From Isurus oxyrinchus (lineage: Eukaryota), in contig JANJGN010000385.1 of the NCBI GenBank assembly GCA_026770705.1, positions 248,001-312,000 of the forward strand: a stretch of DNA of 64,000 nt, read 5' to 3'. Both the position numbers and the translations under genes were made by a program. Of the stretch, positions 9,455 to 63,395 are shown in pieces. How positions within the stretch are numbered: position 1 is the first letter of the stretch; every line of letters begins with the position of its first letter. The notes under the pieces were generated by a model. The model worked only from the letters and a program-made list of their open reading frames with translations, made no database searches and was not told the DNA's origin.

Positions 9455-9594
9455 TCAAACAGTCTGTCGACTTCCTTTCACTGTTTGTCTCTCCCAGACA
9501 CAGACTCCAGTGATAGTGATAACCACAGCCACAAGGAATATCATAGCTCGTATTCCCAGGATCAGGATCACGTGCAGAATCTCTCCTCCACTGT
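9455..9594 (-). CDS. Siglec-like TM/cytoplasmic terminal exon TM1: (D)SGGEILHVILILGIRAMIFLVAVVITITGVCVWERQTVKGSRQTV*
   Basis: Acceptor tttctgtgtgttctctag, phase 1, hydrophobic segment containing Arg, stop TGA. Three paralogous copies in the window. Confidence 0.85.
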
Positions 9595-12500
9595 CTAGAG
9601 AACACACAGAAAGAAATCATCACTGACTCTCCGCTTTCAATCTCTCACTCTGGCTGAACAATCAAGCTTCATATCACTGCAACATTTGCTGTAATATTGA
9701 CCCATCCACTGGGATTCAATGTGGAATGAATGTTTTCATTGTAAACACTCTAAGAGTGGACAATCGGAACTTTCTCCTTAGCGTGGAACATTGGTGAGAA
9801 TGGATCATTGTGCTGTTGGACTCTCTGTCCAATGTTTCTCTCCATCGCTGTGTACAGGATTGTGCTGTAGAAAATTCTGGAAATGTTTAGTGCCGGGTGA
9901 AAATCCATCTCAGCCGTGTGTGCGAATCGGGCAGGATCGGGATGGACTCCCCCACGGACATACACCCCCCGCTTAATAAACAGTTCCAATCTTTACCCAG
10001 AGAGAGGGGAGAATATGGAACTCGCTCCCACAGGGAATGGTTGAGGTGAATAGTAGGAAATTAGGAAGTGAAATTGCTTGAAAAGCTTGGAGATGCAAGG
10101 GTTAAGTGTTACCGTGCTACCACTGGTGGGAGAGTGTAACTACAGCGTGATGTTTACATAGGCAATCCCCATTATGAACATGGACATCATGTGAAAAATG
10201 GGCACTGGAAAGCTGAGAACTTGGAGGAGGTGTTGCCATGGAAAATAATGTGTGTGAGATGTAAAGTTTAGACAGCTTGTCTCTTCATTCAGCAACAATC
10301 AAATAAAGATCAGTTAACTTCTATCGACAGTGAAGCACTTTGAGAGGCATGAGAATGTGGACACTGAGAACGGGCTGCACTGTCAGAGGGTCAGCGCTGA
10401 GGGAGTGCTGATGTAGAATGAAGGGTGTCCGTTCTTACCTTGCACAGTTAGTACGAGGGTCCGCTCCGATGAAACAGATGGATATCTCACTCTGCAGCTG
10501 AGAGTGTGTCCGTGGTGTTTGAGTGATGGGATCAGGGTCAGTACAGAAGTATAGGTCAGAGTGACACCATGCTGAGTTACAGTGTTTGAGACTGATCCAG
10601 GTACGTCAGTGGGAGTGTCCCAGGTTAAGACAGGTGCTGCTGTTCCATTGCACGTTGTGTTGAAGGTGCAGCTTACATCCACACGCTTTCCTGCAATAAT
10701 TTCAGCAGGGAATATCGTGGGTTTATCTGTGAAATCTAACAGACAGAGAATGGATCCTTTTAGAGAAATATAACATGAAGCATCAGTTCAAATAGAAATC
10801 ACAGTCCCACAAGAAAAAGCACTTTTACAAGGATGATATCAGATCTGAGAGGTTACAATGATTAGGATAGAATTTCCTGCTTTGAGACTTTGGTGTTTCT
10901 GTCTCTCAGCTTAATACACGTTCACTCCGAGACACTTGAACTGATAATAGTGGGTGAGGGTGGTGGAGCAGACCAGAGTTTGGAGTGCACTACCTCATCA
11001 TTCACTCAGCGATCTGGGCCATTTGTTACTTTGCAATTTGTGGGAGCTTGCTGTGTGCAAATTGGTTGCTGTGTTTCCCACATTACAATAGTAACTACAA
11101 TTCAGGAATCAGCTCATTGGCTGTGAAGTGATTTGGTCCATGCTGAGGTGGTGAAAGGTGCTACAGAAATGTGAATCTTTCTTCTGTCGCTAAGTCAGAC
11201 TTCGAGACAGGATTAGAGAGATCGATAGGAGTGGATAACCTGATAACATTGATGGACACAGTCAATACATTTAATCATTGATATTAAAGTGAGTATTAGA
11301 GGTTGCTTTAGGAGTGAATTGGAAGCGATCACCAGGTTATTGAGAATCAGACAGTGTGTTATAATAAGCTGTGTTTTGTGTTAATACGTAAACGTCACAG
11401 TTTGTGTTATTTCCCATTGAGTGTTGAATGTGAATTGTTGAGTAATTATAACACAGCACTTACCAGAAACATGAAGCTGGGTTACAGGGTAATAGTTATG
11501 TCTCGGACCATTGTCAAATTCTATTCTGAAAAAATAAGGTCCTGCATCTTCCCGTGTGATGTTGTTTATAATCAGGGAACAGTCGCCATCTTTCAGGTCT
11601 CCAGACAGCCGGGTCCGATGGTGGAACCGTGGTAACTCGTGACTGTGATCCTTGGAGTGAAAGGCTACAGACGATGTTCCCCGTTCCTCATTATTAAACC
11701 AGACTCCACCTCGTGGTTGGTTTTCCAGACACGATGGATAACTGTAATGACATGGAATCTGTACACAGGAACCTTCCTGCGCTGTCACCTCTCGTGGAGT
11801 GTCACCTTTCCACTCTTGTGACAGTCCAGCTGGGGAGAGAAATCTCAATATTTATCTCTGAATGGTTTGTGGATCCACTGAACCCGATATTTACAGATAA
11901 GGCTGAATTGGGGGGATGGTCAATACTGAGGAGAATGGCAACAAATTATTTTGGCAGGAAGAATAGAAAAACAGAATATTATTTAAATGGAGAGAGGCTG
12001 CAGAATGCGGTACAGAGGGATCTGGGTGTCCTTGTACATGAATCACAGAAAGTCAGCATTCAGGAACACCACGGAATGAGGAAGGCAAGTGGAATGTTGG
12101 CCTATATTGCAAAGGGATGGAGTATAAAAGGAGGGAGGTCTTGCAACAGCTGCACATGTTGAGATTGTATCAGGAGCAGTGTGTACAGTTCTGTTCTCCT
12201 TACTTAGGGAGGGATAGACTCTGCATTGGAGGCAGTTCAGAGGAGGTTCACTGGGCTGATTCCTGGGATTAAAGGGTTTGTCCTGTGAGGAAATGTTGAG
12301 CACGTTGGGCCTGTATCCATTGGAGTTTAGAAGAATGAGGGGTGAGCTTATTGAAACATATCCGATTCCGAGGGGGCTTGACAGGGTGGATGCTGGGAGG
12401 ATGTTTCCCCCTCGTGGGGGAATCTAGAACCAGGGAGCACAGTTTCGGAATGAGGGCTCCCCCATTTAAGACTGAGATGAGGAGGAATTTCCTCTCTCAG

Positions 12501-15500
12501 AGGGGCGCTAGCCTGTGGAATTCTCTTCCCCAGAGAGCAGTGGAGGCTGGGCCATTGAATAGACTCAAGGCTGAGTGAGGCAGGTTTTTGATCGACAAGG
12601 GAGTCAAGGGTTTGGGGGACAGGCAGGAGAATGGAGTTAAGGTCACAACCAGATCAGTGAGAGCAGGCTTGAGGGGCCGAATGGCCTGCTCCTGTCCCTA
12701 TTTCTTTTGTTCCTACATTCTTACCTTCTAAATATATTAAAGCTGCAGAATAAACACGCAAGTGACTGACCCGCTCGACCCACCTTCCATCTGGGGGTCC
12801 CATGGGGAGGACCCTTCCTGAGCCAGATCCATCAGCCAACATGGTCTGGATCCGAGCACAGGAGACACGGGGGGGAGTGACTAACAGGCTCCTTGTGACA
12901 GGCCCCATCTGTCCAATGGCTGGCTTTCAGCTGCCAAGGCCAGAGTGGTCCTTGCTAAAACCGGCTCAGGACAGGCCAGGATCCCTGTGCAGACCTCCTC
13001 CAGCGCTGCAGCCTCTGTACAAACCCCTCATGCGCTTGTGGAGAGACACAAACAAGGCTGCGCATTACCGAGGAGAATCCCCTCTATGGACTAAGGGGCT
13101 GACTCATCACCCTAAACTCAGCAAATGAGGAGGCTCTCGCTCGGTATCGGGGCTTGGCATTGGCTCAATAAAAATAATCAAATGACATTTTGGTCAGAAA
13201 TCTAAGGAGGTTTTCCTTCCCTCAAAAATAAGACTCAAGCTGGGGTCAAGGGTCAAAGGGCAACAACTTATATTTACACAACAACTTTAACATGACAAAT
13301 CACCCCAAGGTGCTACACAGGAGCGTCATAAAACAAAGTATGTCACCCAGACACATGTGGAGATATTAGCGACAGCTGGCCAGAAGATGTCGGTGTTATG
13401 GAGAGACAGAGAGAAAGAGACAGAGAGAGAGAGAGAGAGAGAGGGAGCGGTTTCGGGTGGGAATTCCAGAGCTTAGGTTCCCAGGGAACTGAAGGCACGG
13501 CCGGTAATTTTGGAGCGATAGCATCCGGTGATGGTCAAGAGTCTGGAATAGGAGGAGCGCAGTGATCTCGGGGGGTTGTAGGTGCTGTAGTTTGTACAGA
13601 GGCTGTAGAGAGGCTACAAATTAGGAAAATTTGGAGAGGCTGGAGGAGGTTACAGAGCTAGGGAGGGTTGTACAGTATGCAGGTGGTTACAGAGATAGGG
13701 AGGGTTGTAGGGGCAGGATGGGTTTACAGAGATACGGAAGGTTGTAGGGGCTGGAGGAGCTTACAGTGAAAGGGGGGGCAGTGTAGGGACTGGTGGAGGT
13801 TACAGGGTAAGGCAATCTTTAGGGGCCTGAGTAGGTTACAGAGACAGGGGGTTTGGAGGGACTGGAGAAATTTATAGTAAAAGGGAGTCTTTAGGGGCAA
13901 AAGATAGTTACAGAGATAGAGAGGCTGGACGGGAATGGGAAATGTTATGGAGATAGGGGGTTTGTAGGTACAGGATGGGGTTATAGGGACTGGATGAGGT
14001 TACAGAGATAGAGAGTGCTGTAGGGACTGGAGGAGGTTACAGAGATAGAGAGTGCTGTAGGGACTGGAGGAGGTTACAGAGATAGAGAGTGCTGTAGGGA
14101 GTGGAGGATGTTACAGAGATAGGGGTTGTTGCAGCGGTTGGTGAAGGTTACAGAGAAATGGACCGTTGTTGGAGCTGGAAGAGGTTTATGAGGTAGTGGT
14201 GGTTATAGGGACTGAAATAATTTACAGAGATTGGGAGTGTTGTAGGGGCTGGAGGAGGTTACAGAGATAGGGAGGGTTGTAGGTACTGGAGGAGGACGAG
14301 GAGATTACAGGGATAGTGAGGAAACAAAGATGAAAATTTGGACATTGAGACTTTGCTTGACCAGGAGCCAGTCTCGGTCATCGAGCAGAGCGGGTGATAA
14401 GGGAATGGGACTTGGTGTGAGTAAGGACGGGGTCAGCAGTTTTGGATGGCCTCAAGTTTATGGAGTGTAGAGCGTGTGTTGGAACAGTCGAGTCTGGAGG
14501 TAATGAAGGTGTGGATGAGGGTTTCAGCAGCAGATGAGCTGAGACAGGGTGAAGTCGTACGATGTTACGGAGGTGGAAATAGACGGTGTTAGTGAGGGCG
14601 CAGATATGAGGCCGGAAGCTCATCTCAGGATCAAATGGGACAACAAAGCTGTGAACAGATTGGCTTCAATCTCAGAGAGCTGTCAGGGAGAGGAATGGAG
14701 TTGGTAGCGAGGGAACAGAGTTTGGAGCGGGGAATGAAGATAATGGCTTCAGTCTTTCCAATATTTAATTGGAGGGAATTTCTGCCCATCCAGTACTGGA
14801 TGTCGGATAAGCAGCCTGATAATTTAGCAGCAGTGGAGGAGTCGAGAGAGGTGGTGGTGAGGTAGAGCTGGGGATCCTCAGTGGACAGGTGAAAACTAAC
14901 ACTGTTCAGATGATGCTGCAAAGCCATTGCAAGTGATTCTCTGGCTACGATGAGTTGGATAAGAATGGAGCCAGGGGAGAGCAGTCCCACCCAGCTGGAC
15001 GACAGTGGACAGGTGTTGGAGGAGGATGGTGTGGTCGAGCGTTTCAAAGGCTGCAGACAGATCGAGAAGGACGAGGAGGGAAAGTTGACCTTTGTCACAG
15101 TCACACAGGATGCCATTTGTGACTTTGATAAGAGCTGTTTCAGCACAGTGGCTGGGGTGGGAACCTGATTGGAGGGATTCAAACATGGAGTTCCGGGAAA
15201 GATGGGAACGGATTCGGGAGATGGAAACGCGTTCAAGGACTTTGGAGGGGAAAGAGAGGCTGGAGATGGGACGGGGGTTTACACGGACAGTGTGAGGGGT
15301 GGAAGGTGTAGTGGGGAGGAGACACTTCACTCAGGGGGGAGGTGTCATCACCCCTCAGCTCGGTTTACGTTACAGCTATGATGTGGATTCAATCACACAC
15401 AATAAGCTCATGGATCTGGGAGCAGAAATAGACAAATCATTAAAAATAGTGACGCTGGTTAACACGGCCAAAAAACAAGCAAATCAAACACTATTATTTC

Positions 15501-18500
15501 CCGTTGAGTGTTGGATGTGAATTGTTGAGTAATTATAACACAGCACTTACCAGAAACATGAAGCTGGGTTTCAGGATAGTAGCTGTAACTATTGTTGCCG
15601 TCAAATTCTATTCTGAAATAATAATATCCTGCATCTTCCCGTCTGATGTTGTTTATAATCAGGGAACATTCGCCATCTTTCAGGTCTCCAGACAGCCGGG
15701 TCCGATGGTGTAACCGTGTTAACTCGCGATTGTGATCCTTGGAGTGAAATGCTATGATCCCTCTAGACCTTGTATTCCATGTATTCCATGTGTACCATAT
15801 CACATACCAGATTCCGACACGTGCTTTCCCTACTAAACGTGCTGGGTAACTGTAATTACATGGAATCTGTACACACGAACCTTCCTGCGCTGTCACCTCT
15901 CGTGGAGTGTTGCCTTTCCACTCTTGTGACAGTCCAACTGGGGAGAGAAATATCAATATTTTACTCTGTGTGTTTTGTCAATCCACTAGACTCGATATCC
16001 ACCCCCTCCTTCACTGGGGCACAGTGGCTGCAGTGTGGACCATCTACAGGACACACAATGAACTCCCCAAGGTATCACAATAGATGGAAGTGAATCCTGG
16101 AAACAGGAGTGGACAAGTTCATTCTACATTGGCTCATGGTCCTCAGGACCCTGTTTGTGCACAAGCCTGCTATCCAACAGAACTGAAGTTGGGGAAAATC
16201 CATTTGGAATTCCATTGTCCAGGGCATTGTGTTAACTTGCTGAGTTTGTTTCAAATCTAACATCTATTTTTGGTCTGTTGCCTTAAAGGGAGTGTAACTG
16301 GGAGTCAGGTTAATTAGGAATTTTAGGAGTTATTATAGCAGTCATTGTAGTCTTACGTCTGTGCTTAAAATCTTTTATTTTGATGATAAATATTTTAATT
16401 TATTTTTTTAAATCTCTAAAGATCTTGGTGGACTTATTGCTTCTGAATTCAGTGCACACATCTCATAATAAATAAAAAAATCAAGAATCATTATGATCGT
16501 GTGACCACCTTTCTCTCAGGGACTTGGTCTGCCTGGCACACATCACCTGCCAAGTGATAACACTGTTGTAATATGCCTTTCAGGGACAGCAGCATGACAT
16601 CACTCGAGGGGAAGTGTGTCATGTGATTTTTCGGAACTGGGGTTGGCTTAAGGAAGCTCTCTGTGTATTTGTGTGCATTAGGCATAAGGTATATCTTTCA
16701 ATTCAAGTTTAGTTTGTCTTTCTGTATTTGGGTGTTTTGAAAAGGGGGAACTTGAGTTTTGGTTTCACTTTGGAAGAAGCCGCCTGTCTAATGAGTTTTT
16801 ATGACTCTTGAAGGGAAGTCAAAACAAACACAAGGTAGAATAAACTGTGCTGTTGCCTAGTAACAGTGATCCAGAGGGAAAGACCCACAGAGACCGAGAA
16901 AAACAGAAAAGTACTTTCAGTTCTGTTGAAAGGAGTTGCCAGGAGAAGCAGCAAAGGAGCGGGACAGATAGTCAGTCCCAAAGTAAAGATGAAGCCAAAA
17001 CCATCGAGTGGAACAGGAGAAAGGGCCCAAGAAAACCTTCTTGTCAAATCTGAAAAAGGCCCTGTTAAGTGAAGTTAAGAGTGAGGAGCAGAAAAAGGCT
17101 CCAAACATAAAGGGAGAAAGCAGCAGGACACAGGCCTAATGCAAAATAGGCTTGCGAGAAGCCAGACGATCCTAGGAGACACCACTGGTTGGTGACTCAT
17201 TACTACGGCCATGTGAAGCCATGGTGTCCCATTGACACGGCTGAGCATTGGAGAGACAGAGCGTGGAAGGAAGGCTGAATGCACGTGGCGATCCAGGGGG
17301 CAGGAACATGGGAAGGAGAGTTTGAAATAGTGAAAGTGGTCCCTTGTGGAAGGTGTCTGAGTGAAAGTGTCATGTTGGAGAAGATTCCAAAGCGAGTTCT
17401 TGGAGAGTGGAGATTGGAAACCCTCATATGGATATCTCAGTTCAGTGAGACTGGTGGTCCCACAGTGTAACAAACGTCTGGGGACAGATGAGGAGGGAGA
17501 CATAGCATTTGTTTCAAGTGGGTTCTGTCAGTTTCTTTCTGAATGTGGTGTCCCTGACCACAGGTCGTCTATTGGTTTACATCGACTGTGCACTTATTGT
17601 GAACATGAGAGTATAAGATAGCTATTGTAACATGTGTTCTACTTATGAATCTGTAAAGGTATAGGTCTGGGTGAAGGAGTAATGTAATATAGTTTGTCTT
17701 TCCTAGTTTAATAAATGTTTTATTCTTTAGTTAGAAGTTCATCAGATGACTCCTGTGACTCTGTTCAGTAGCTGCACTCCACATTCCTAAATAAAAAATA
17801 AAAGTTAGGACCTATCAAGCTGAGTTCCACCCTGGGATCTGACTTGCCCAGTAGTAACATCAGCTGGGATGATAACACCATCCAGTCCAAGTTTCACTTT
17901 GGCCTGTGAGCAGAACACAGCTCACACAGTTTGGCTGCAGGTGTCTCCCAGCTTTCTATCCTTGTATATCTGTTCTTATGTCCCTGTTCTAAATAACTGA
18001 ACCCACAATGTATTTACCCAATTCCGTATCAGTGGCTGGTGCCTTTATATCATTATAAAAACACAACATGGTGATCAGCGGTGGCCAACCATTCTGGCAG
18101 CAAGATTCAGTACAGGTATGACGTGGTGAACAGCCTTAGATCGAGCTACATGACATGAGATGACCCTCGACGCTTTGGTCAGACCACAACAGAGACACAG
18201 CATCAGAGAGGGTTGAAATCGCAGTGTACTGACTGCTCAGGAAACCTTTGAAGACACAGTGACGGGAAAGAGTTCAAGTAAAGAGCTGGGGAGCAGACGG
18301 ATCCCTCGTGGTGAGATTACAGCACACGGCCTGTAGGTCAGTGAGTGGGACAGTGTGTATCGCCAGGACCAGCAGCGGGTTAGCTCAGTCAGGGAAGGCG
18401 AGTGACCAGGGTGTGGGCTGGATCGATAGTGAGCGAGGGAGAGTCAAACACACAAAAACCATTATAAAAATCAGCCCAGAGAAGTTAGTGATTATAACGG

Positions 18501-21500: not shown

Positions 21501-24500
21501 CAACCTTCCTACATTCAAGTTTAGACCGTTTATATATACCACAAACAGCAAGGGACCCAACACCGATCCCTGTGGAACCCCACTGGACACAGGCATCCAG
21601 TCACAAAAACACCCCTCGACCATCACCCTCTACTTCCTGGCACTCAGCCAATTCTTGATCCAATTTGCCAAATTCCCGGATCCCATGGGCTCTTACTTTC
21701 GTTTACAGTCTCCCATGCGGGACCTTATCAAAAGCCTTGCTGAAGTCCAAGTTGACTATGTCAAATTCATTGCCCTCATCTACACAATTGGTCACCTCTT
21801 CAAAAAATTCAATCAAACTGGTCAGACATGACCTCCCCTTAACAAGACCATGCTGACTGTCCTTGATTAATCCCTGCCTCTCCAAGTGTAGATTAATTCT
21901 GTCCCTCAGAATTGCTTCCAATAGTTTCCCCACCACTGAGGTTAGACTGACTGGCCTGTTGTTCCCTGGTTTATCCCTTCCTCCCTTCTTGAATAACGGT
22001 ACCACATTGGCTGTCCTCCAGTCCTCTGGTACCTCTCCTCTGGCCAGAGATGTATTGAAAATTATTGCCAGCACCCCTGCTATCTCCTCCTTTGCCTCAC
22101 TCAACAGCCTGAGATACATTTCATCCGGGCCTGCAGATATATCTACGTTTGAGACTGCCAGACCACTTAGAACCTCGTTCCTTTCTATTCTAATTTCTTT
22201 AACTATATCACAGTCCTTCTGCCTGATTTCCAAACCCTCATTGCCCCTCTCACTTGTGAACACTGACACAAAGTGTTCATTTAGAACCCTACCTACGTCT
22301 TCCGGCTCCACACACAAACTACCAATATGGTCCTTAATGGGCCTTAATCTTTCCCTAGTTATCCTCTTACTCTTAATGTACTTGTAAAATAACTTTGGAT
22401 TTTCCTTCATTTTTCCTGCTAATGTTTCTTCATGCCCCCTTTTTGCTCTACTAATTTTCTTTTTAAGGTCCCCCCTACACATTCTATACTCTTCTAAGGC
22501 TTCCACTGTTTTGAGCCCTCGGTATCTGCCATAAGCCTCCCATTTTCTCTTTATCCAATCCTGTAAATCTCTCGACATCCAGGATTCCCTGGATTTGTTG
22601 GTCCCACCCTTTGCCTTTACTGGAATATGTTGGCCCTGTACTCTCCCCACTTCCTTCCTGAATGAGTCCCATTGCTCTGACGCAGATTTCCCTAAAGGTA
22701 GCTGCTCCCAGTTCCACTCTGGCCAAATCATATTTGATCTTATTAAAATCAGCCTTTCCCCAATTGAGAACTCAGATTTCTGGCCCATCCTTGTTCTTTT
22801 CCATAACAACCTAGAATCTAATGGAATGATGATCACTATCTGCACAATGCTCCCCCACTGATACGTCTACCACTTGCCTGGTTACATTCCTTAAAATTTA
22901 CTCCAGGACCGACCCCTCTCTTGTAGGATCTTCTATGTACTGGCTTAAAAATCTCTCCTGGATGCATTTTAACAATTCTGCCCCCTCTAAAACTATCACA
23001 CTATGACTAACCCAGTTATTGTTGGGGAAGGTGAAAAGCCCCACCATTACAACCCGATTATTTTTATACTTCTCTGAATGTTGACTTTGTATCTGCAATT
23101 CTATTTCTCTGAGTGTCATTGGGCCTGTAGAACACTCTCAGCAAGCTGATTGCTCCTTATTTGTTTTTAGGTTCTACCCATATGGCTTCATTTGAGGAGC
23201 CCCCTAAGGTGTCTTCCCTCCTCACTGCAATAACTGATTCCTTGATCAATCTTGCAATACCCCCTCCTCTTTTACCTCCTTCCCTGTCTTGCCAGAAGAC
23301 CCTGTATCCTGTAATATTGAGCTGCCAATCCTGCCCCTCTCTCAACCATGTCTCTGTGACAGCAATGACATCATACATCCATGTGTTATTTGTGACCTCA
23401 ACTCATCTGCTTTATTCGTCAAGACTCCTTGCATTAAAATAAATACAATCCAACTTTGCCACGCTATCTTGTGCCTTAACTGGCCAATAATTTCTCTGCC
23501 TTCCAGGTTCACTTGCTCTCTCTTCTAATTTTGGCTGTGCATCTCCCTCTGCTGAACCTCCTCTCGGGATCCCATCCCCTGCCATGTTAGTTTAAAACCT
23601 CCCCAGTTGCATCAAGGGCAAAATGCCAATTGAAACCAGGGAGAACATCCAAGAATGACAATCCCACAGATCACTGTGAGCATTTAAAGACACCTCCAGA
23701 CAAGGTTACTACCACAAGATCTGGGCGTAAGTGCAGATTACCTCTACTCTTTAGAGACTCAAATATTCAACAAATCTATACTGTTATCTAATTGTCAATA
23801 AAATTGAAAATGATACCAGAAACCTCTTGTTCCCTGTCCTTCTCAAAGATCCATCCCTGCAGCTGGAGCCTTAAGAGTTATTGATGTGGGGCTTAATTTA
23901 TCAGATTGTCGAATGATCGGGAACAAAAGGAAGCCATTTGGCTCATCGAGCCTGTGCTGGGCCTTTGAAATATCTGTCCAATTAGTCCCACTCTCACCTC
24001 TGCTCTCTCCTCCACAGCCCTGCAAAATGTCCTCTTCAAGTATTTATCCAGTTCCCCTTCTGAAAGTTCCTGTTGAATCTGCTTCCACCGCCCTTTCAGG
24101 CAGTGAGTCAATGGTCTCTCTCTGAGCTGCAAAGTGCTAATGTTCTGTGAAATTTAAACTCTGCAGCAGGTCAGAGACAATTATGATAACTCAGAATATT
24201 TGACAGTTCTACACACAGACAGCTTTGCCTCCCTTGTCTCTTTCAGTTATCTTGCTCCCTTATTGAAGTATCTAGCATTGTGAGAATGGACAGGAAGAGT
24301 GACACTGAACAGCCTGTCTATTCTAGGAGCTGCTGTGTTGTCTTCATGGGAAATTCTGACTAAAATCAGCAAAAGACACGAAGTTTCAGGGCATTGTTAT
24401 CCGTGTCCTAACATCAGGGTAGACCTCATCCCCCAGTTTTTATCCCTGATTCTCTATTCAGCCGATCGCTGCCCTGTCACTGGCTGAACTACACTAACTC

Positions 24501-29415: not shown

Positions 29416-29560
29416 CCAGGACCTGTCCGACTGCTCGCCTGGGGAGGAACTGCCCACACGCTCTGCTTGGGCTGAATGACCTCTTCCTGTGCTGCTCCCT
29501 CTGTGTGTTTAATTAGAAAGGGTTGATGTGTCTCTGGGAGACAAAATGGGGAAGTGGGTA
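29416..29560 (-). promoter_or_regulatory. Putative first exon and Ets/PU.1-site promoter of gene A/B
   Basis: Donor GG|gtaagt at 29415, clustered GGAA cores including aaaatggggaagtg (29543-29556). Paralog similarity ends just beyond this site. Confidence 0.55.
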
Positions 29561-29779
29561 ATCAGTGAGAAGATCGAGGATGTTTTGTGCTCTCAGCAAA
29601 ACGTTTACCATGTGATGATCTGTCAGCTCATATTTGGGCAGCTGTAGTCATCAAGCTTCTCCATTGGCTCCGTGGGATTAGACCCCTCCCCCTCATCTCA
29701 GAGCTGAAGCGCAGGCGATAGACTTCCCAATACAGGTCTCTGGCCGTATGATACATATTGACAATCCCTGATATCATTA

Positions 29780-30450
29780 CTGAAGGAGTGCTGCACTGTC
29801 AGGGCTATAGTACTGAGAGAGTGCTGCACTGTGTGAGGGTCAGTACTGAGTGAGTGCTGCACTATCAGAAGGTCAGTAATGTGGGATTGCTGCACTGTCA
29901 GAGGGCCAGTAGTGAAGGATTGCTGCAATGTCGGAGGGTCAGTACTGAGGGAGTGCTGCACTGTCAGAGGGACAGTTATGTGGGAGTGCTGCACTGTCAG
30001 AGGGTCAGTAATGTGGGAGTGCTGCACTGGAAGAGGGTCATTAATAAGGGAGTGCTTCACTGTCAGGAGTATAGTACTGAGGGAGTGCTGCACTGTGGGA
30101 AGGTCAGTACTGAGCGAGTGCTGCACTGTTAGTGGGGTCAGTACTGAGGGTCTGCTGCACTGTCAGAGGGTCAGTAATGTGGGAGTGCTGCACTGTCAGA
30201 GGGCCAGTAGTGAAGGAATGCTGCAATGTCGGAGGATCAGTACTGAGGGAGTGCTGCACTGTCAGAAGGTCAGTAATGTGGGAGTGCTGCACTGTCAGAG
30301 GGACAGTAATGTGGGAGTGCTGCACTGTCAGAGGGTCAGTAATGAGGGAGTGCTGAACTGTCGGCGGGTCTGTACTGAGTGAGATTTGCACAGTCGGAGG
30401 GTCAGTATTGAGGGGGTGCCGGACTGTGGGAGGGTTAGTACTGAGGTAGA
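29780..30450 (+). repeat. 33-bp minisatellite array
   Basis: Tandem degenerate units. Confidence 0.95.
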
Positions 30451-43314: not shown

Positions 43315-43455
43315 CCAGTACCTGTCCGACTGCTCGCCTGGGGAGGAACTGCCCACACGCTCTGCTTGGGCTGAATGACCTCTTCCTGTGCTGCCCCCTC
43401 TGTGTATTTAATGAGAAAGGGTTGATGTGTCTCTGTGAGACAAAATGAGGAAGTA
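43315..43455 (-). promoter_or_regulatory. Putative first exon and PU.1-site promoter of gene D
   Basis: aaaatgaggaagt at 43442-43454 and a conserved donor at 43314. Confidence 0.5.
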
Positions 43456-43644: not shown

Positions 43645-44350
43645 GTTCTGCACTGTCGGAGGGTCAGTATTGTTGGAGTGCTACCCTGTCAGAGGGTCAG
43701 TACTGAGGGAGTGCTGCACTGTTGGCGCGTCAGTATTGAGGTGTGCTGCACTGATGGAGGATAAGCAGCGAGGGAGTGCTGCTCTGTTTGAGGGACAGCT
43801 GTGAGGGAGTTCTGCACTGTCAGAGTGTTGGCACTGAGGGAGTGCTGCACTGTCGGCCGGTCAGAACTGAGGGAGTGCTGCACTGTTGGAGGGTCTAAAC
43901 TGAGAGAGTGCTGCACCCGTTGGAGGGTCTGAACTGAGGGAGTGCTGCACTGCTGGAGGGTCTAAACTGAGGGAGTGCTGCAGTGTCGGAAGGTCTGAAC
44001 TGAGGGAGTGCTGCACTGTTGGAAGGTATAAACTGAGGGATTGCTGCACTGTAGGAGGGTCTAAACTGACGGAGTGCTGCACTGTCGGAAGGTCTGAACT
44101 GAGGGAGTGCTGCACTGCTGGAGGGTCTGAACTGAGGGAGTGCTGCACTGTTGGAGAGTCTGAACTGAGGGAGTGCTGCACTGTTGGAGGGTCTGAACTG
44201 AGGGAGTGCTGCACTGTTGGAGGGTCTAAACTGAGGGAGTGCTGCACTGTTGGAGGGTCTGAACTGAGGGAATGCTGCACTGCTGGAGGGTCTAAACTGA
44301 GGGAGTGCTGCACTGTTGGGGGGTCTGAACAGAGGGAGGGCTGCACTGTC
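43645..44350 (+). repeat. 33-bp minisatellite array
   Basis: Tandem units, tctgaact/tctaaact variant. Confidence 0.95.
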
Positions 44351-45774: not shown

Positions 45775-45914
45775 TCAAACAGTCTGTCGACTTCCTTTCA
45801 CTGTTTGTCTCTCCCAGACACAGACTCCAGCGATAGTGATAACCACAGCCACAAGGAATATCACAGCTCGTATTCCCAGGATCAGGATCACGTGCAGAAT
45901 CTCTCCTCCACTGT
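45775..45914 (-). CDS. TM/cytoplasmic exon TM3: (Y)SGGEILHVILILGIRAVIFLVAVVITIAGVCVWERQTVKGSRQTV*
   Basis: 140 nt, phase-1 acceptor, stop TGA. Confidence 0.87.
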
Positions 45915-51900: not shown

Positions 51901-54900
51901 TTTTCAAACTTGGTGGGGAACGTGTCACTGAGCTGAATACACTTTCACTCCCAGACCCTTGAATTGCCAACACTGGGGTGTGGGTGATGGAGCAGCCCAC
52001 AGCTCATGGAACCCTGGCTCATCATTCTCTCAGAGATCTGGGTCACTGATCCCATTGCTCTCTGTGGGATCTTCCTGTGCACAAACTCACTGCCACGTTA
52101 GACAGTGACTATACTTCAAGAATTTCTTCATTTTCTGTGAAATGATTTGAAATTTGCTGAGGTGGTGTAAGGCGCTATAGGAATGCACATCCTTCTTTTG
52201 TCAAATTGTTAGACATTTAAAAAGCATTAGGTAGACTGATGGGAGTGGATAACCTGATAACATTGATGGACACAGTCAATACATTTAATCATTGACATTA
52301 AAGTGAGTATTAGAGGTTGCTTTAGGACTGAACTGGAAGCTATCACCAGGTTATTGAGAATCAGACAGTGTGTTATAATAAGCTGTGTTTTGTGTTAATG
52401 TGTAAACGTCACAGTTTGTGTTATTTCCCATTGAGTGTTGGATGTGAATTGTTGAGTAATTATAACACAGCACTTACCAGAAACGTGAAGCTGGGTTACA
52501 GGGTAATAGTTATGGCTCGGACCATTGTCAAATTCTATCCTGAAAAAATAAGGTCCTGCATCTTCCCGTCTGATGTTGTTTATAATCAGGGAACAGTCGC
52601 CATCTTTCAGGTCTCCAGACAGCCGGGTCCGATGGTGGAACCGTGGTAACTCGTGACTGTGATCCTTGTAGTGAAAGGCAATGGGAGCCCAGGGAATCTG
52701 TTCCTCATTATTAAACCAGACTCCACCTCGCGGTTGGTTTTCCAGACACGATGGATTACTGTAATGACATGGAATCTGTACACACGAACCTTCCTGAGCT
52801 GTCACCTCTCGTGGAGTGTCACCTTTCCACTCTTGTGAGGGTTCAGCTGGGGAGAGAAATCTCAATATTTATCTCTGGATGGTTTGTGGATCCACTAGAC
52901 TCAAAATTTACAGATGTGGCTGAATTGGGGGGATGGTCAATACTGAGGAGAATGGCAACAAATTATATTGTCAGGAAGAATAGAAAAACAGGATATAATT
53001 TAAATGGAGACAGGCTGCAGAATGCAGTACAGAGGGATCTGGGTGTCCTTGTACATGAATCACAGAAAGTCAGCATTCAGGAAAACCATGGAATGAGGAA
53101 GGCAAGTGGAATGTTGGCCTTTATTGCAAAGGGATGGAGTATAAAAGGAGGGAAGTCTTGCAACAGCTGCACAGGGCGTTAGTGAGATTGTAACACGAAC
53201 ATTGTGTACAGGCAGTTCAGAGAAGCTTCACTGGGCTGATTCCTGGGATTAAAGGGTTTGTCCTGTGAGGAAATGTTGAGCAGGTTGGGCCTGTATCCAT
53301 TGGAGTTTAGAAGAATGAGGGGTGACCTTATTGAAACATATCCGATTCCGAGGGGGCTTGACAGGGTGGATGCTGGGAGGATGTTTCCCCCTCGTGGGGG
53401 AATCTAGAACCAGGGAGCACAGTTTCGGAATGAGGACTCTCCCATTTAAGACTGAGATGAGGAGGAATTTCCTCTCTCAGAGGGGCGCTAGCCTGTGGAA
53501 TTCTCTTCCCCAGAGAGCAGTGGAGGCTGGGCCATTGAATAGACTCAAGGCTGAGTGAGGCAGGTTTTTGATCGACAAGGGAGTCAAGGGTTTGGGGGAC
53601 AGGCAGGAAAATGGAGTTAAGGCCACAACCAGATCAGTGAGGGCTGGCTCGAGGGGCCGAATGGCCTGCTCCTGTTCCTATTTCTTATGTTCCTACATTC
53701 TTACCTTCTTAAAATATTAAAGCTGCAGAATAAACATGCAAGTGAATGACCCGCTCGACCCACCTTCCATCTGGGGGTCCCATGGGGAGGACCCTTCCTG
53801 AGCCAGATCCACCAGCCAACATGGTCTGGATCCGAGCACAGGAGACACTGGGGGGAGTGACTAACAGGCTCCTTGTGACAGGCCCCGTCTGTCCAATGGC
53901 TAGCTTTCAGCTGCCAAGGCCAGAGTGGTCCTTGCTAAAACCGGCTCAGGACAGGCCAGGACCCCTGTGCAGACCCCCTCCAGCGCTGCAGCCTCTGTAC
54001 AAACCCCTCATGCGCTTGTGGAGAGACACAAACAAGGCTTCACATTACCGAGGAGAATCCCCTCTACGGACTAAGGTGCTGACTCATCACCCTAAACTCG
54101 GCAAATGAGGAGGCTCTCGCTCGGTATCGGGGCTTGGCATTCGCTCAATAAAAATAATCAAATGACATTTTGGTCAGAAATCTAAGGAGGTTGTACATTC
54201 CCTCAAAAATAAGACTCAAGCTGGGGTTGAGGGTCAAAGGGCAACAACTTATATTTTCACAACAACGTTAACATGACAAATCACCCCAAGGTGCTACACA
54301 GGAGCGTCATAAAACAAAGTATGTCACCCAGACACATGTGGAGATATTAGCGACAGCTGGCCAGAAGAGGTCGGTGTTATGGAGAATCTTCAAAGAGGGA
54401 TGAAATGGATAGTGAGAGAGAGAGAGTGGGAGTGAGGGATGGAGAAGGCTTGAGGGAGGGTATTACGGAGCTCGGTCCCCAGGCAGCTGAAGGCATGGCC
54501 ACCGATGTTAGAGTGTTGAGATCGGGGGATGGTCAAGAGGCTGGAATTGGAGGAGCGCAGAGACCTCTGAAGGTTGGTGGGTCTGGAGGAGGTTACAGAG
54601 ATAGGGAGGGTTGCAGGGGCTGAAGGAGGTTACAGAGATAGCGAGGTTTGTAGTGATTGGAGGAGTTATAGCGATAGGGAGGTTTGTAGGGGCTGGAAAA
54701 GTTAAGAGAGATTGGGAGAGTGTAGGGTCTGGAGGAGTTTGCAGAGGTTGGGAGGGTTGTAGTGACTGGGGCAGGTTACAGAGGCATGGCAGGTTGTCGG
54801 AACTGGAGCAGGCTACAGAGATAGGGAAGCTTTTAAGGGCATGAGGAAGTTACAGAAATAGGGAGGTTTGTAGTGGCTGGAGGATGTTGCAGAGATTGGT

Positions 54901-57900
54901 AGGTTTGTAGGGCAGGATGAATTTACAGATATAGGGAAGCGGTAGAGGCTTGACGAGGTTACAGAGATAGGGAGGGTTGTAGGTACTGGAGGAGGACGAG
55001 GAGATTACAGGGATAATGAGGAAACAAAGATGAAAATTTGGACATTGAGACTTTGCTTGACCAGGAGCCAGTCTCGGTCATCGAGCAGAGCGGGTGATAA
55101 GGGAATGGGACTTGGTGTGAGTAAGGACGTGGTCAGCAGTTTTCGATGGCCTCAAGTTTATGCAGTGCAGAGCGTGTGTTGGAACAGTCGAGTCTGGAGG
55201 TAATGAAGGCGTGGATGAGGGTTTCAGCAGCAGATGAGCTGAGACAGGGTGACGTCGTGAGATTTTACGCAGGTGGAAATAGATGGTGTTAGTGAGGGCG
55301 CAGATATGAGGCCGGAAGCTCATCTCAGGATCAAATGGGACAACAAAGCTGTGAACAGATTGGCTTCAATCTCAGAGAGCTGCCAGGGAGAGGAATGGAG
55401 TTGGTAGCGAGGGAACAGAGTTTGGAGTGGGGAATGAAGACAATGGCTTCAGTCTTTCCAATATTTAATTGGAGGGAATTTCTGCCCATCCAGTACTGGA
55501 TGTCGGATACAAAAACAGAATTACCCGGAAAAACTCAGCAGATCTGGCAGCATCGGCGGAGAAGAAAAGAGTTGACGTTTCGACTCCTCATGACCCTTCG
55601 ACAGAACTTGAGTTCGAGTCCAAGAAAGAGTTGAAATATAAGCTGGTTTAAGATGCGTGTGTGTGGGGCGGAGAGTGGGAGAGAGAGAAGTGGAGGGGTC
55701 TGTGGTTGTAGGGACAAACAAGCAGTGATAGAAGCAGATCATCAAAAGATGTCAACAACAATAGAACAAAAGAACACATAGGTGTTAAAGTTGGTGATAT
55801 TATCTAAATGAATAATATTTATTCTTCGGCTCATCTGACGCCTCAACAAGAAACTTTTTCTCTTTTTCGTTTAGATAATATCACCAACTTTAACACCTAT
55901 GTGTTCTTTTATTCTATTGTTGTTGACATCTTTTGATGATCTGCTTCTATCACTGCTTGTTTGTCCCTACAACCACACCACCCCCCCTCCACTTCTCTCT
56001 CTCTCTCTCTCTCTCCCCCCACCTCCACACACACAGCTTAAACCAGCTTATATTTCAACTCTTTATTGGACTCGAACTCAAGTTCTGTCGAAGGGTCATG
56101 AGGACTCGAAACATGAACTCTTTTCTTCTCCGCCGATGCTGCCAGACCTGCTCAGTTGTTCCAGGAAATTCTGTTTTTGTTTTGGATTTCCAGCATCCGC
56201 AGTTTTTGTGTTTTTATCTCTGGATGTCGGATAAGCAGCCTGATAATTTAGCAGCAGTGGAGGAGTCGAGAGAGGTGGTGGTGAGGTCGAGCTGGGGATC
56301 CTCAGTGGACAGGTGAAAACTAACACTGTTCAGATGATGCTGCAAAGCCATTGCAAGTGATTCTCTGGCTACGATGAGATGGATAAGAATGGAGCCAGGG
56401 GAAAGCAGTCCCACCCAGCTGGACAACAGTGGAGAGGTGTTGGAGGAGGATGGTGTGGTCGAGCGTGTCAAAGGCTGCAGACAGATCGAGAAGGACGAGG
56501 AGGGAAAGTTGACCTTTGTCACAGTCAAACAGGATGCCATTTGTGACCTTGATAAGAGCTGTTTCAGCACAGTGGCTGGGGTGGGAACCTGATTGGAGGG
56601 ATTCAAACATCGAGTTCCGGGAAAGATGGGAACGGATTCGGGAGATGGAAACACGTTCAAGGACTTTGGAGGTGAAAGAGAGGCTGGAGATGGGACGGGG
56701 GTTTACACGGACAGTGTGAGGGGTGGAAGGTGTAGTGGGGAGGAGACACTTCACTCAGGGGGGAGGTGTCATCACCCCTCAGCTCGGTTTACGTTACAGC
56801 TATGATGTGGATTCAGTCACACACAATAAGCTCATGGATCTGGGAGCAGAAATAGACAAATCATTAAAAATAGTGACGCTGGTTAACACGGCCAAAAAAC
56901 AACCAAATCAGACACTATTATTTCCCATTGAGTGTTGGATGTGAATTGTTGAGTAATTATAACAAAGCATTTACCAGAAACGTGAAGCTGGGTTTCAGGA
57001 CGGTCGTTGTATCTATTCCTGCTGTCAAAATCTGTTCTGAATAAATAATATCCTGCATCTTCCCGTCTGATGTTGTTTATAATCAGGGAACTGTCGCCAT
57101 CTTTCAGGTCTCCAGACAGCCGGGTCCGATGGTGGAACCGTGGAAACTCACGATTATGATCCTTGGAGTGAAAGGCTATAGACCGTTCATTCCATGTTTC
57201 CCAATTCCTTCTCATATACCAGATTCCGACTGGTGATCTCGCTACTAAATATGATGGATAACTGTACTTACATGGAATCTGTACACACGAACCTTCCTGC
57301 GCTGTCACCTCTCGTGGAGTGTCGCCTTTCCACACTTGTGATAGTCCAACTAGGGAGAGAAATATCAATATTTAACTCTGAATGTTTTCTCAATCCACTA
57401 GACTCAATATCCACTCCCTCGATCACTGGGACACAGTGGCTGCAGACTGGATAATCCACAGGTCACACAATGAATGCCCCAAGGTTTCACGACAGATCGA
57501 AGAGTATCCTGGACACAGGAGTGGACAAGTTCATTCTACATTGGCTCATGGCCCTCAGGAACCTGTTTAGTGAAGTCAGTCTGCCACCCAACACAGTGTC
57601 TACAAGACGCACTGATTGAAGTGAGTTCACTGCTGATTTACAACGTAGGACAATGGATTAGGAGCCTTCAGAATTCCCCCATTATCACCATCATGAATCA
57701 TGAATTGGCCTAGCTGTCCGATATCCTCAATGTCTAAGGCAGTGGTTCCTATTGTGATGAAAGTATAATAATTTTCATAATATTTTATAGTATATTGTGA
57801 AGTAGGTTTATGGGGGTACGCATGATGGGTCTGCATGTGATTTAAGTACATTTGGAGTTAATTAGATTGGAAGTTTAAAATGATCAAAAGGAGCTAGGTG

Positions 57901-60900: not shown

Positions 60901-63395
60901 GCTGTGACTGAACCAGACGAGCCACCCATAAAAATTCACCTCGCGATTGGGAATGAAGGTCTACACAGGCTGAACACCTCAGGATTAACAGCAGAAGAGC
61001 GAAAGGATCCCCAATAGATATGGACGACATTGGAAGACAGGTTCAGAATCACGTTAAACTTCATATTCATCAACTAGAGTTTATGTCATTTCATCAGCTT
61101 ACACAATCCATAGACCACTTCATCAGCCGATGTAGAGAAAAGGGTACGCACTGTGATTTCAAACACAGAGCCTGCAGACAGAGTTGTTGAGTTGGTGATC
61201 GCATCCACTCCCATGGAAGCCTTCCAGAAAGATCTGCTAGATAAGACCAAAACCTACAGCATTGAAGAGCTACTCAAGGATGGACATAAATACGAAGTGA
61301 TCCTCGCAGGTCAACGAAGCTTACAGGTCCTCAGTACAACATCAATTGTTGACACACTCACTAGAACATCCAGACCTAGTGAGACGTGTGGAAGGTGTGG
61401 CCTTCTGCAGGCACCAAGGAAATGCCCAGCTTTCCACCAATCCTGCAAGGCTTGTGGCAGAAAGGGCCATTGACAGCGGCAGGGCACTAGAGCAAAGGCT
61501 GATGCCGCTACAGAGAGCCGTGCGCTGATCCAAACTAACCCTACACAACGGGGAACCTTCAAGCAATAAGAATGACCATCCGCTATCCCATCAGGAACAT
61601 ATACATGTGGTGACTGACAAACCAGGAAATGGCGATGATGTGCACGGTGAGACGAGGAGCGGTGATCGATATTCTACCTCTCACACATATCCTGACGTGG
61701 CTTGCCAATAAATTGTGGATTGAGGTCTTTATTGATCTCTCTGAGCACATCAAATAAACTGAAAATGTCCCAAGGGGTGGGATTTGCTGGCCCCACCCAC
61801 TGCCAGGATTGTCTGGACCAGCCGAAAGCCAAAGGATTTATGTCTGTCCCAGTCTCAGAAACTACTCCATCACCTCAGTTCATGACATAACATTGAAATA
61901 TGCAGAAAGTTTCAACAATATTGGCAATTTCAAGGGAGCTGGAACATCACACCTGCAGGAGAATGCAAGTCTGTCAGACTCCTTGCATTTAAATAATTGC
62001 AATCCAACTTTGCCATTCTATCTTCTGCCAATAATTTCTCTGCCTTCCAGGTTCATTTGCTCTCTCTTCTAATTTTGGCTGTGCATCTCCCTTTGGTCAA
62101 CCTCTTCTTGGGATCCCATCCCCTGCCATGTTAGTTTAAAGCCTCCCCAGTTGCATCAAGGGTAAAATGCCAATTGAAACAAGTGGCAACATCGAAGAAT
62201 GACAATCCCACAGATCAATTTGAGCAATTAAAGACACCTCCAGACAAGGTTCCCACCACAAGACCTGGGCGTAACAGCAGATTACCTCTATGCTTTAGAG
62301 ACTTAAATATTCAACAGATCTATACATTTATGTAATTGTCAAGAATTATGAAAATGATACCAGAAACCTCTTGTTCCCTGTCCTTGTCAAAGATCCATCC
62401 CTGCAGCGGGAGCCTGAAGAGTTATTGATGTGGGGCTTAATTTGTCAGATTGTAGAATGATCTGGAACAGAAGGAAGCCATTTGGTCCATCGAGCCTGCG
62501 CTGGGCCTTTGAAAGATCTGTCCAATTAGTCCCACTCTCACCTCTGCTCTCTCCTCCACAGCCCTGCAAAATGTCTCCTTCAAGTATTTATCCAGTTCCC
62601 CTTCTGAAAGTTCCTGTTGAATCTGCTTCCACCGCCCTTTCAGGCAGTGAGTCAATGGTCTCTCTCTGAGCTGCAAAGTGATAATATTCTGTGAAATTTA
62701 AACTCTGCAGCAGATCAGAAACAATCATGATAACTCAGAATATTTGACAGTTTTACACACAGACAGCTTTACCTTCCTTCCCTCTTTCAGTTATCTTGCT
62801 CCCTTATTGAAGTATCTAGCAAGGTGAGAATGGACAGGAAGTGTGACACTGAACAGCCTGTCTATTCTAGGAGCTGCTGTGTTGTCTTCATGGGAAATTC
62901 TGATTAAAATCAGCAAAAGACACAAAATTTCAGGGCATTGTTATCCGAGTCCCAGCATCAGGATAGACCTCATCCCCCAGTTGGTATTCCTGATTCTCTA
63001 TTCAGCGGATCGCTCCCCTGTCACTGGCTGAACTACACTGACTCCCAGTACAGCAATGTCTCAAATTTCAAATTCTCATCATCGATTTCTTACCCCACCA
63101 TCCCCCCTCTACACTCTCTATCTGTGTAACCTCCTCCAACCCTAAAACCCTCTGAGATCTCTGCTCTCCTCCAATTCTGCTGTCAGACAGGGAGTCAGTG
63201 TATATCAGTGAGCACAGGGGTGATGGGTGAATGGGACTTGGTGTGTGTTTGTACACTGGCTCACTGCTGAATCGTTTCCCAATCACAGCTCAATAAGAAT
63301 GATCTTTTACAAAGACTATTAACCATAAATCTGTCCAAGCTGATGATGTTATTACCTTGGAGAAGTGACAGGAGGAAGTAAGATTTCCCGATCAT
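45775..63395 (-). CDS. Intact Siglec-like gene E, SP-V7-V6-C2-Ig-TM (about 500 aa, multi-exon span), predicted activating sialic acid-binding Ig-like lectin
   Basis: Exons 63395-63356, 57349-56975, 52846-52478, 51162-50866, 47934-47653 and 45914-45775 are all open, GT-AG and phase 1, summing to 1503 nt. Confidence 0.85.
47653..47934 (-). CDS. Third Ig (I/C2-set) exon: DAPRNLSITSP..VIICSVESFPASNLMW..DTGEYQCVAENEHG..ITVE
   Basis: 282 nt, canonical C, W and DxGxYxC motifs, acceptor tttttag, donor gtgagt. Confidence 0.92.
48070..48410 (+). repeat. 33-bp minisatellite array in the C2-Ig intron
   Basis: Tandem units. Confidence 0.92.
48670..48880. mobile_element. Penelope-like pseudo-LTR inverted pair (hairpin)
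   Basis: caggtctggcagcatcgg..tttcgagtcctcatgacc is followed by its reverse complement ggtcatgaggactcgaaac..ccgatgctgccagacctg. Confidence 0.75.
49000..50680 (+). mobile_element. Decayed CR1 LINE ORF2
   Basis: NWGKANF, MANVVPLLKKGGRDRSGNYRPVSLTSVVGK, QHGFVKGRSCLTNLI, SGVPQGSVLG. Confidence 0.93.
50866..51162 (-). CDS. Siglec C2-set exon, copy 5
   Basis: 297 nt, donor gtaagt, one amino-acid difference from copy 1. Confidence 0.93.
51430..51740 (+). mobile_element. Short decayed CR1 3' fragment
   Basis: ctgttctcttgaacagagaaggttgaagggtgac..ttcaggaggaacttctttacccagagagtgg. Confidence 0.7.
52478..52846 (-). CDS. Siglec V-set exon V6 (intact, YFFRIE)
   Basis: 369 nt open, begins AEPSQEW, and has an extra Cys in NPSCLEN. 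Confidence 0.92.
52903..53700 (+). mobile_element. CR1 LINE 3' fragment (paralog of 11885-12700)
   Basis: Near-identical to the V2-V1 intron copy. Confidence 0.9.
54580..55010 (+). repeat. 37-bp minisatellite
   Basis: Same unit as 13570-14310, with a different array length. Confidence 0.85.
55040..56715 (-). mobile_element. L2-like LINE RT fragment interrupted by a Penelope-like insertion
   Basis: Paralog of 14340-15290, containing LLVLLDLSAAFDTLDH. Confidence 0.88.
55510..56219. mobile_element. Penelope-like insertion with inverted arms and a 14-bp TSD
   Basis: Arms at about 55510-55808 and 55870-56175 are reverse complements. ctggatgtcggata occurs at 55496-55509 and 56220-56233, and as a single copy at 14796-14809. 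Confidence 0.85.
56975..57349 (-). CDS. Siglec V-set exon V7 (distal type, YLFRTD, E-strand Cys replaced by Ser)
   Basis: 375 nt open, acceptor ccctag, donor gtaaat. Confidence 0.85.
57753..59998. mobile_element. Two adjacent LTR-like elements (57753-58678; 58683-59998)
   Basis: TG...CA termini, paralogous to 16157-17877. Confidence 0.65.
60000..61975 (+). mobile_element. Decayed Gypsy-type retrotransposon (gag with zinc knuckle)
   Basis: MSTKFPSLNWD..EFRMFKQR and CGRCG..CPA..CKACGRKGH. Duplicate of 17880-19856. Confidence 0.8.
63356..63395 (-). CDS. Signal-peptide exon of gene E (MIGKSYFLLSLLQ)
   Basis: 40 nt, phase-1 donor gtaat, exon acceptor at 63438. Confidence 0.87.

Follow-up and report, generated by a model that had tools for sequence, protein, structure and literature searches.

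A cluster of exons on the minus strand of the 64,000-nt stretch of Isurus oxyrinchus DNA analysed here (the window) encodes receptors of the Siglec type (Siglecs are immunoglobulin-like lectins that bind sialic acid), and we consider it likely, with a probability of roughly three in four, that the window is part of a large, elasmobranch-specific expansion of activating-type Siglec receptors with one to three variable (V) heads. The exon structure was drawn from the open reading frame (ORF) listing, exon alignments and tblastn, and all positions are those of the window. In the receptors that we propose, each domain is encoded by one exon, in the order leader, one or two V-set domains, a C2-set domain, an optional further immunoglobulin (Ig) domain, and a last exon with a transmembrane (TM) arginine and a 13-residue tail. 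The membrane-distal V domain would bind sialylated glycan via a conserved F-strand arginine, and the TM arginine would pair with an acidic residue in a DAP12-, DAP10- or FcR-gamma-type adaptor that carries an ITAM (immunoreceptor tyrosine-based activation motif), such that ligand binding would activate the leukocyte, as in mammalian Siglec-14, -15, -16 and -H. Segmental duplications made four units that are 90-97% alike, short-tract gene conversion would keep their C2 exons nearly identical while the distal V exons change fast, and a deletion at 4-5 bp of microhomology joined two units intron to intron, giving the in-frame reading V-C2-V-V-C2-TM.

Homology searches, run exon by exon, identify the domains as those of Siglecs. 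In Pfam, the V exons matched V-set with E-values of 1e-11 to 1e-13 and Ig_CD22 at about 1e-9, the C2 exons matched C2-set_2, and the exon for a third Ig domain (Ig3) matched Ig_3/I-set. When the V exon V5 was searched with phmmer against all solved structures in the PDB, the 17 best matches were all Siglecs (E-values of 2e-15 to 5e-13), among them Siglec-5 (1.9e-15), Siglec-7, CD33, Siglec-8, Siglec-10, MAG and sialoadhesin; the next family, pIgR, followed far behind at 2e-8, and V6 gave the same result. Together, the Pfam and PDB E-values exclude a chance match. The C2 exon matches domain 2 of MAG, CD33, Siglec-8 and Siglec-10, and a great-white protein (P0014) that is 75% and 93% identical to the window V and C2 exons, respectively, scored best against the V-C2 structure of CD33 (86 bits), followed by those of MAG (74 bits), Siglec-5 (66 bits) and CD22 (34 bits). 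The domains are thus of the Siglec type that an earlier reading of the sequence alone had assigned to them.

The residues by which Siglecs are recognized are also present. The Siglec cysteine pattern, which has two B-strand cysteines (CxxxxC) and one E-strand Cys in the V domain, followed in C2 by C-x5-C and one more Cys, is found as SCVQIPC ... DCSLII in V2-V7 and as CTFNTTC ... SCRV in all C2 exons, and the shark domains would presumably share the Siglec disulfide pairing. The motif YFFRIE of V5 aligns on YFFRVE of Siglec-5, which holds the sialic acid-binding arginine, and an F-strand arginine within a (Y/F)FR motif occurs in six of the seven V exons (V1, V2, V4, V5, V6 and V7), the dead exon V3 having Ser. 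This arginine is kept in most elasmobranch rows of the alignment, with Lys, Ser or Glu in a few ray and skate domains, a pattern consistent with sialic acid binding by the shark V domains.

The anchor points to an activating type of receptor. The last exon encodes the TM helix EILHVILILGIRAVIFLVAVVITIAGVCVW followed by ERQTVKGSRQTV and a stop codon, and an arginine lies inside ILILGIRAVIFLV in all three TM exons. The tail, ERQTVKG(S/R)RQTV, comprises 13 residues without a tyrosine and ends at the in-exon stop, features from which an activating function and adaptor pairing may be predicted for the shark receptors. When eleven elasmobranch relatives supplied the tail sequences for a tblastn search of the 64-kb window, neither an inhibitory TM exon nor one with an immunoreceptor tyrosine-based inhibition motif (ITIM) was found, and an inhibitory partner gene with a near-identical ectodomain is not present within the 64 kb. 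The search recovered only three relic juxtamembrane cytoplasmic exons of inhibitory type, which lie between the units (43315-43407, 38254-38346 and 29416-29496). These relics are approximately 94% alike, have AG and GTAAGT borders, encode SSTGRGHSAQAERVGSSSPGEQSDRSW, and match, with E-values of about 1e-8 to 1e-10, the exon for the juxtamembrane cytoplasmic segment of P0014, the great-white 'CD33-like' protein, which bears an ITIM. Each lies approximately 450 nt upstream of a leader exon, and they are probably leftovers of an inhibitory ancestor that were carried along in the duplication unit. The description of the family as activating-type suits the TM arginine and Tyr-free tail of the window copies, but does not extend to those relatives in other elasmobranchs that carry ITIM plus ITIM-like tails, or to the inhibitory relics between the units. 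A comparison of the Arg-TM exon with the uncharged TM exon of an inhibitory basking-shark protein (P0002) gave a weak match of 41% over 34 residues (E-value of 0.08; ...FIFI-CVRKRKTVTEER against ...VIIIAGVCVWERQTVKGRR), which hints that the activating TM exon was derived from an inhibitory one. Literature searches for DAP12 in cartilaginous fish returned no relevant paper.

Searching the whole window by tblastn with each exon type recovered seven V, five C2, one intact Ig3, three TM and four signal-peptide (SP, or leader) exons, and no further copy of any type other than two dead Ig3 half-copies. The sequence-only reading had already counted the V, C2, TM and SP exons correctly, and its cluster limits of 9455 and 63395 are exact: position 9455 closes the stop codon of the lowest TM exon, and position 63395 holds the A that opens the start codon (ATG) of the highest SP exon. 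Intact exons measure 366-387 nt (V), 297 nt (C2, five copies), 282 nt (Ig3) and 140 nt (last exon with the TM segment, three copies); V1 to V7 measure 375, 369, 366, 368, 369, 387 and 366 nt, respectively. All listed exons have AG/GT borders, with an acceptor TCTCTCCC(C/T)AG and a donor G/GTAA in the V exons (the slash marks the exon end) and the form ATG...CAAG/GT in the leader exons. Three exons are broken: V3 (40731-41096) has a TGA at the conserved Trp codon in addition to the change of the key Arg to Ser, V4 (36543-36910) is 368 nt long owing to a 1-bp deletion that causes a frameshift and a stop, and the SP exon at 42193-42224, which ends in phase 2, carries an 8-bp deletion. In the intact Ig exons the phase is symmetric (1-1), the other SP exons end in phase 1 and the TM exons start in phase 1, so the earlier statement that all exons are of phase 1 holds for the intact exons and fails for the broken SP exon and the frameshifted V4. 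Phase-1 Ig exons are a general rule of the Ig superfamily and are nothing special to the shark cluster. The four architectures described earlier break down into an intact gene, a dead one, a frameshifted one and a predicted fusion that a deletion made; the two dead Ig3 half-copies, the three relic cytoplasmic exons and the three broken exons had been overlooked.

Self-comparison resolved four duplicated units, counting the fused units B and A as one, with a likeness of 90-97% between units. The intact gene is unit D (63.4-45.8 kb; leader, V1, V2, C2, Ig3, TM), in which all six exons are open and the splice sites are intact. Its leader exon (63356-63395) reads MIGKSYFLLSLLQ plus one base and specifies the same leader as P0014. 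The membrane-distal V1 (56975-57349; 375 nt, phase 1-1) keeps the arginine, with altered residues around its motif (YLFRTDFD), and has Ser at the E-strand position of the intradomain disulfide, in contrast to Cys in 49 of the 49 other aligned V rows. The second V exon, V2 (52478-52846; 369 nt), has the arginine in YFFRIE and an extra Cys in a YPSCL-type loop, and it is followed by C2 (50866-51162; 297 nt, with a C-x5-C motif), Ig3 (47653-47934; 282 nt, I-set/Ig_3, the sole intact copy) and the TM exon (45775-45914), with the intramembrane Arg, the 13-residue tail and the stop codon.

The pseudogene unit (42.2-39.4 kb) consists of the broken leader (42193-42224), the dead V3 (40731-41096, with Ser for Arg in FFSIKFD) and a C2 exon (39381-39677) that is 99-100% like the other C2 exons, after which a satellite array follows and there is no TM exon. 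Unit C (37.8-33.1 kb) comprises an intact leader (37771-37810), V4, in which the stop falls near the 3' end, C2 (35388-35684), an Ig3 relic and a TM exon with the Arg and stop codon (33103-33242). Unit B (29.0-24.7 kb), which is 96.6% identical to unit C up to 24727, where the match ends, comprises an intact leader (28926-28965), the intact V5 (27697-28065), which is of the single-V type and lacks the extra Cys, the C2 exon C2d (26541-26837) and a second Ig3 relic. Unit A, below 24731, is about 90% like unit D and comprises V6 (15551-15937; 387 nt, membrane-distal type), V7 (11464-11829; second-V type with the extra Cys), both intact, the C2 exon C2e (10439-10735) and a TM exon with the Arg and stop codon (9455-9594). 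The Ig3 relics of units C (34913-35062) and B (26066-26215) are dead 3' halves, 86% like the intact exon and with two stops each, and unit A has no trace of an Ig3 exon by tblastn of the whole window, indicating that the length of the ectodomain has been changed by Ig3 loss. The extra Cys lies in the B-C loop (YPSCLEN) of V2, V3 and V7, and across the alignment it is confined to V domains with another V ahead of them, being present in 10 such rows from sharks and rays and absent from the roughly 22 domains that come first or stand single. Since the dead V3 has this Cys even though it now follows a leader, the pseudogene unit probably descends from a two-V gene.

Units B and A meet in a chimeric intron. 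In a three-way alignment, unit B's last intron, which resembles unit C at 33.57 kb, gives way cleanly at a GATT microhomology (24727-24731) to unit A's intron 1, which resembles unit D at 63.27 kb and is entered approximately 80 nt past the position of the unit D leader donor. The clean switch at microhomology indicates that a deletion took the TM exon of B, the spacer, and the promoter and leader of A. The sole open reading left in B+A is leader-V5-C2-V6-V7-C2-TM, for which the unit B leader is the only possible start; its seven exons are open and in phase, with intact splice sites. That this intron-to-intron deletion at 24.7 kb made a working chimeric receptor, leader-V-C2-V-V-C2-TM(Arg), is nevertheless a tentative proposal, to which we assign a low probability. 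If true, exon shuffling between tandem paralogues would have been caught soon after the event and, together with C2-only gene conversion and a fast-changing distal V, the fusion would show how shark Siglecs arrive at new lengths of the ectodomain and new numbers of heads while using a single signalling module.

The family extends well beyond the window. A scan of 1.84 billion representative proteins returned 1432 matches, 34 of them below 1e-30, and NCBI names the best relatives 'sialic acid-binding Ig-like lectin 8/12/13/14', 'CD33-like' and 'MAG-like'. Relatives are predicted in at least nine elasmobranchs (Scyliorhinus canicula, S. torazame, Cetorhinus, Mustelus, Hypanus, Hemitrygon, Pristis, Carcharodon and Chiloscyllium), and mapping of the window exons onto them gave the architectures V-V-C2, V-V-V-C2, four V plus C2, and V-V-Ig-Ig-TM; the order V-C2-V-V-C2 was absent among the elasmobranch-clade models examined. 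The joints between domains in these relatives agree with our splice predictions, with QVGLS from leader to V and HVSDFTDKP from V to C2, and the joint TVQYS from Ig to TM in P0022 fits the Tyr codon predicted at the Ig3-TM joint in the window. The same Arg-TM tail occurs in two RefSeq models, P0006 of Scyliorhinus torazame and the cluster representative P0022, while other elasmobranch relatives end in LLYASINF...TEYAQIRF, an ITIM plus an ITIM-like motif much like LHYASL...TEYSEI of mammalian CD33-related Siglecs.

Automatic annotation (NCBI RefSeq/Gnomon) therefore already predicts the family, multi-V members included, as in XP_072326180.1 (Scyliorhinus torazame), XP_078093144.1 and XP_078093145.1 (Mustelus asterias), XP_038670873.1 (S. 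canicula), XP_078389734.1 (Cetorhinus maximus) and XP_041037180.1 (Carcharodon carcharias). These models have the same leader, V domains 72-88% identical and C2 domains up to 97% identical to those of the window, and in P0006 a tail ending in ...KGSRQTV. They differ in being predictions from other species, many of them with long ITIM plus ITIM-like tails that are absent from the window. Literature searches found no paper on Siglecs in sharks or cartilaginous fish.

In a quick maximum-likelihood tree of 140 V domains, with branch support from the Shimodaira-Hasegawa-like approximate likelihood ratio test (SH-aLRT), the window V exons fall within an elasmobranch-only clade with a support of 95, in keeping with the earlier proposal of a lineage-specific cartilaginous-fish family. 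V1 and V6 group with the first V domain of a basking-shark protein and V2, V5 and V7 with its second, indicating that the two V types, distal and proximal, are older than the split of these sharks. The apparent sister of the elasmobranch clade, with a weak support of 51, is a tetrapod CD33-type clade (labelled members: primate Siglec-12, bat Siglec-8, tree-shrew CD33, and frog 'Siglec-12' and 'Siglec-5'). Of the phylogeny that the sequence-only reading had proposed, the tree covers the comparison with CD33-related Siglecs; a search for further sequences, made with a primate Siglec-12, yielded only mammalian CD33-related Siglecs and no true MAG, CD22, Siglec-1 or Siglec-15. In human, MAG and CD22 are neighbours of the hepcidin gene HAMP at 19q13.1. 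One ancestral region was reportedly proposed for all Siglecs by Cao et al. 2009 (Immunogenetics).

Mammalian Siglecs provide the closest known parallels. Siglec-14, Siglec-16, mouse Siglec-H and Siglec-15 have the same V-set with the essential Arg, a C2 domain, a basic TM residue and a short ITIM-less tail (PMC7226832, from which the facts on mammalian activating and teleost Siglecs used for comparison are taken). The shark receptors differ from these in belonging to an elasmobranch-only clade, in placing as many as two V domains, or three in the fused reading, ahead of a C2 domain, and in having no inhibitory partner within the window. Primate Siglec-12 shares the two consecutive V-sets ahead of C2, and presumably it is for a tandem V that NCBI gave the name 'Siglec-12' to several shark and ray relatives; it differs in being inhibitory, with an ITIM tail, and in belonging to the mammalian CD33-related clade. 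Because the mammalian and shark double-V proteins lie in separate clades, the tandem V probably arose independently. In primates, gene conversion keeps both the V and the C2 domains of a pair alike, whereas in the shark window only C2 is homogenised and the distal V diverges.

The evidence for this homogenisation comes from synonymous sites. Pairs of C2 exons have a synonymous divergence (dS) of about 0.01 within a range of 0-0.026, equivalent to 0-2 synonymous differences among 77 synonymous sites, where about 8-11 would be expected from the divergence of the flanks, which are approximately 86-89% identical; even the C2 exon of the pseudogene unit is 99.7% like C2e. The V exons have dS values of 0.11-0.35, matching their introns. 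The near-absence of synonymous change in C2 against diverged flanks indicates homogenisation, probably by short-tract gene conversion centred on the exon. For the distal V pair V1-V6, the ratio of nonsynonymous to synonymous divergence (dN/dS) is 1.12, a value that fits relaxed constraint as well as positive selection, and most changes, along with indels, fall in the B-C to C-C' region; for V2-V7 and V2-V5, the comparisons within the second type of V, dN/dS is 0.33-0.34. The earlier picture of variable V domains on a fixed C2 and TM module is accordingly correct in that the V domains diverge while C2 and TM are nearly constant, but the fixed C2 looks like the result of gene conversion rather than a designed constant module. 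Likewise, the cluster does contain duplicated units, as the description 'expanding' implied, but with its dead and frameshifted genes it evolves by birth and death, being recently duplicated and partly decaying.

Transcripts of the family were found in public data. Contigs of four public runs (X1, X5, X7 and X19) were placed on the V6-V7-C2e region (10200-16100). In X1, X5 and X7, which come from three studies, contigs join 11464 to 10735 and skip 728 bases with GT..AG on the minus strand, which corresponds to the V7 donor and the C2e acceptor. One X1 contig joins 15551, the donor of the distal-type V6, to the start of a second-type V, at which eight letters fit V2 better than V7, making this joint family-level evidence. 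The fourth run, X19, looks like DNA, since its contigs contain no joints and run through introns. The family is thus transcribed and spliced, both V to C2 and V to V, and transcription may be supposed, though less securely, for particular window copies. At position 10542 the window carries a T that is specific to C2e, and all four runs show the A of the remaining four C2 copies; either the T is peculiar to the individual that was assembled, or the transcript of this copy is missing from the runs.

Several observations weigh against the interpretation that we favour. A lesion or oddity is present in three of the four SP-headed units, such that few or no window copies may make a working receptor, and V1 is the sole V row of 50 without its E-strand Cys. 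The RNA contigs show the family without assignment to window copies, as the base at 10542, which reads as the other C2 exons, illustrates. The position next to the Arg motif that is occupied by a G-strand aromatic residue, Trp in several mammalian Siglecs and Tyr in Siglec-5, is His in the shark domains. Finally, a sister relation to the tetrapod CD33-type Siglecs, which would place the family with the CD33-related Siglecs as opposed to MAG or sialoadhesin, has a weak support of 51.

Some of these observations would be explained if the family were real and expressed from other loci but no window copy were functional, with B+A not joined in a single mRNA, unit B yielding at most a truncated V-C2 protein and unit A silent. 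Unit A indeed has no leader exon or promoter of its own, the first V domain of unit D would be destabilised by the loss of its Cys, V3, V4 and one SP exon carry lesions, the contigs carry paralogue-type letters, and the V1-V6 ratio is as expected under relaxed constraint. We regard this as improbable, however, because the six exons of unit D and the seven of B+A are open with intact splice sites, the dN/dS of 0.34 for V2-V7 points to past purifying selection, the lesions are few and recent-looking, and other sharks have predicted multi-V models that end in the same TM tail. A second account, about as doubtful, accepts Siglec homologues in the window but has them, whether by loss or from the outset, bind not sialic acid but some different ligand, such as a protein, another glycan or a pathogen molecule, like several mammalian Siglec-related proteins that have kept or lost the arginine and do not act as lectins. 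The strong variation of the distal V domains in the B-C to C-C' region, which includes Trp- and Asn-rich insertions, and the G-strand His are in its favour; retention of the F-strand Arg in all window V exons but the dead copy and in most elasmobranch rows, together with the Siglec Cys pattern, weighs against it. That some copies are false haplotype duplicates or collapsed or expanded repeats, making the cluster smaller than it looks, is very improbable and is rejected as an explanation of the copies: although the identity between units B and C amounts to 96.6% across 4.8 kb and satellite arrays and transposon fragments hinder assembly, the copies differ by 3-15%, a divergence of 3.4% is much more than alleles ordinarily show, the units are also set apart by private indels, by stops, by a LINE insertion and by the exons they contain (a TM exon in C; a fusion to A in B), and the DNA-like run, with even depth across exons and introns, gives contigs 96-100% identical to the unit A introns.

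We thus retain an elasmobranch-specific expansion of activating-type Siglec receptors as the preferred reading, and note the repeats among which its exons lie. A 33-bp satellite with a consensus like TCAGTACTGAGGGAGTGCTGCACTGTCAGAGGG, listed without strand, forms its largest array at 29774-31758 and others at 1831-2075, 8240-8723, 38634-39169, 43648-44349 and 48067-48408, either between units or in the intron after a C2 exon. Single units of it occur within approximately 30 nt after the C2 exons C2c, C2d and C2e, one of them near 10374-10410. Its depth in the public runs is thousands-fold, indicating that it is a genome-wide repeat. Both the unit borders and the truncation of the pseudogene unit coincide with this satellite, and the arrays are likely recombination substrates. 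A 37-bp tandem repeat (GGTTGTAGGGGCTGGAGGAGGTTACAGAGATAGGGAG) is present in the V-V introns of units A (13980-14295) and D (54572-54995) and upstream of V3 (41661-41964). The fused B/A intron contains a 380-aa ORF (21703-22845, minus strand) with reverse-transcriptase (RT) motifs that was judged by eye to be a fragment of a long interspersed nuclear element (LINE). A shorter RT-like fragment is common to the V-V introns of units A (14631-15330) and D (56214-56754), also on the minus strand, and is for this reason older than their duplication.

The kind of receptor described here is already known, from activating Siglecs and from the two-V Siglec-12, and gene models are already in RefSeq. Papers on fish Siglecs, which are teleost-centred, state that fish have only Siglec-1, CD22, MAG and Siglec-15 and are without CD33-related Siglecs (PMC7226832). 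If our reading is correct, sharks would have a large, fast-evolving Siglec expansion with activating-type members and multi-headed ectodomains, and the cluster would be a natural example of domain-exon duplication, fusion by deletion and exon-limited homogenisation. This would imply that rapidly evolving Siglec clusters, and probably paired signalling too, are not a mammalian invention.

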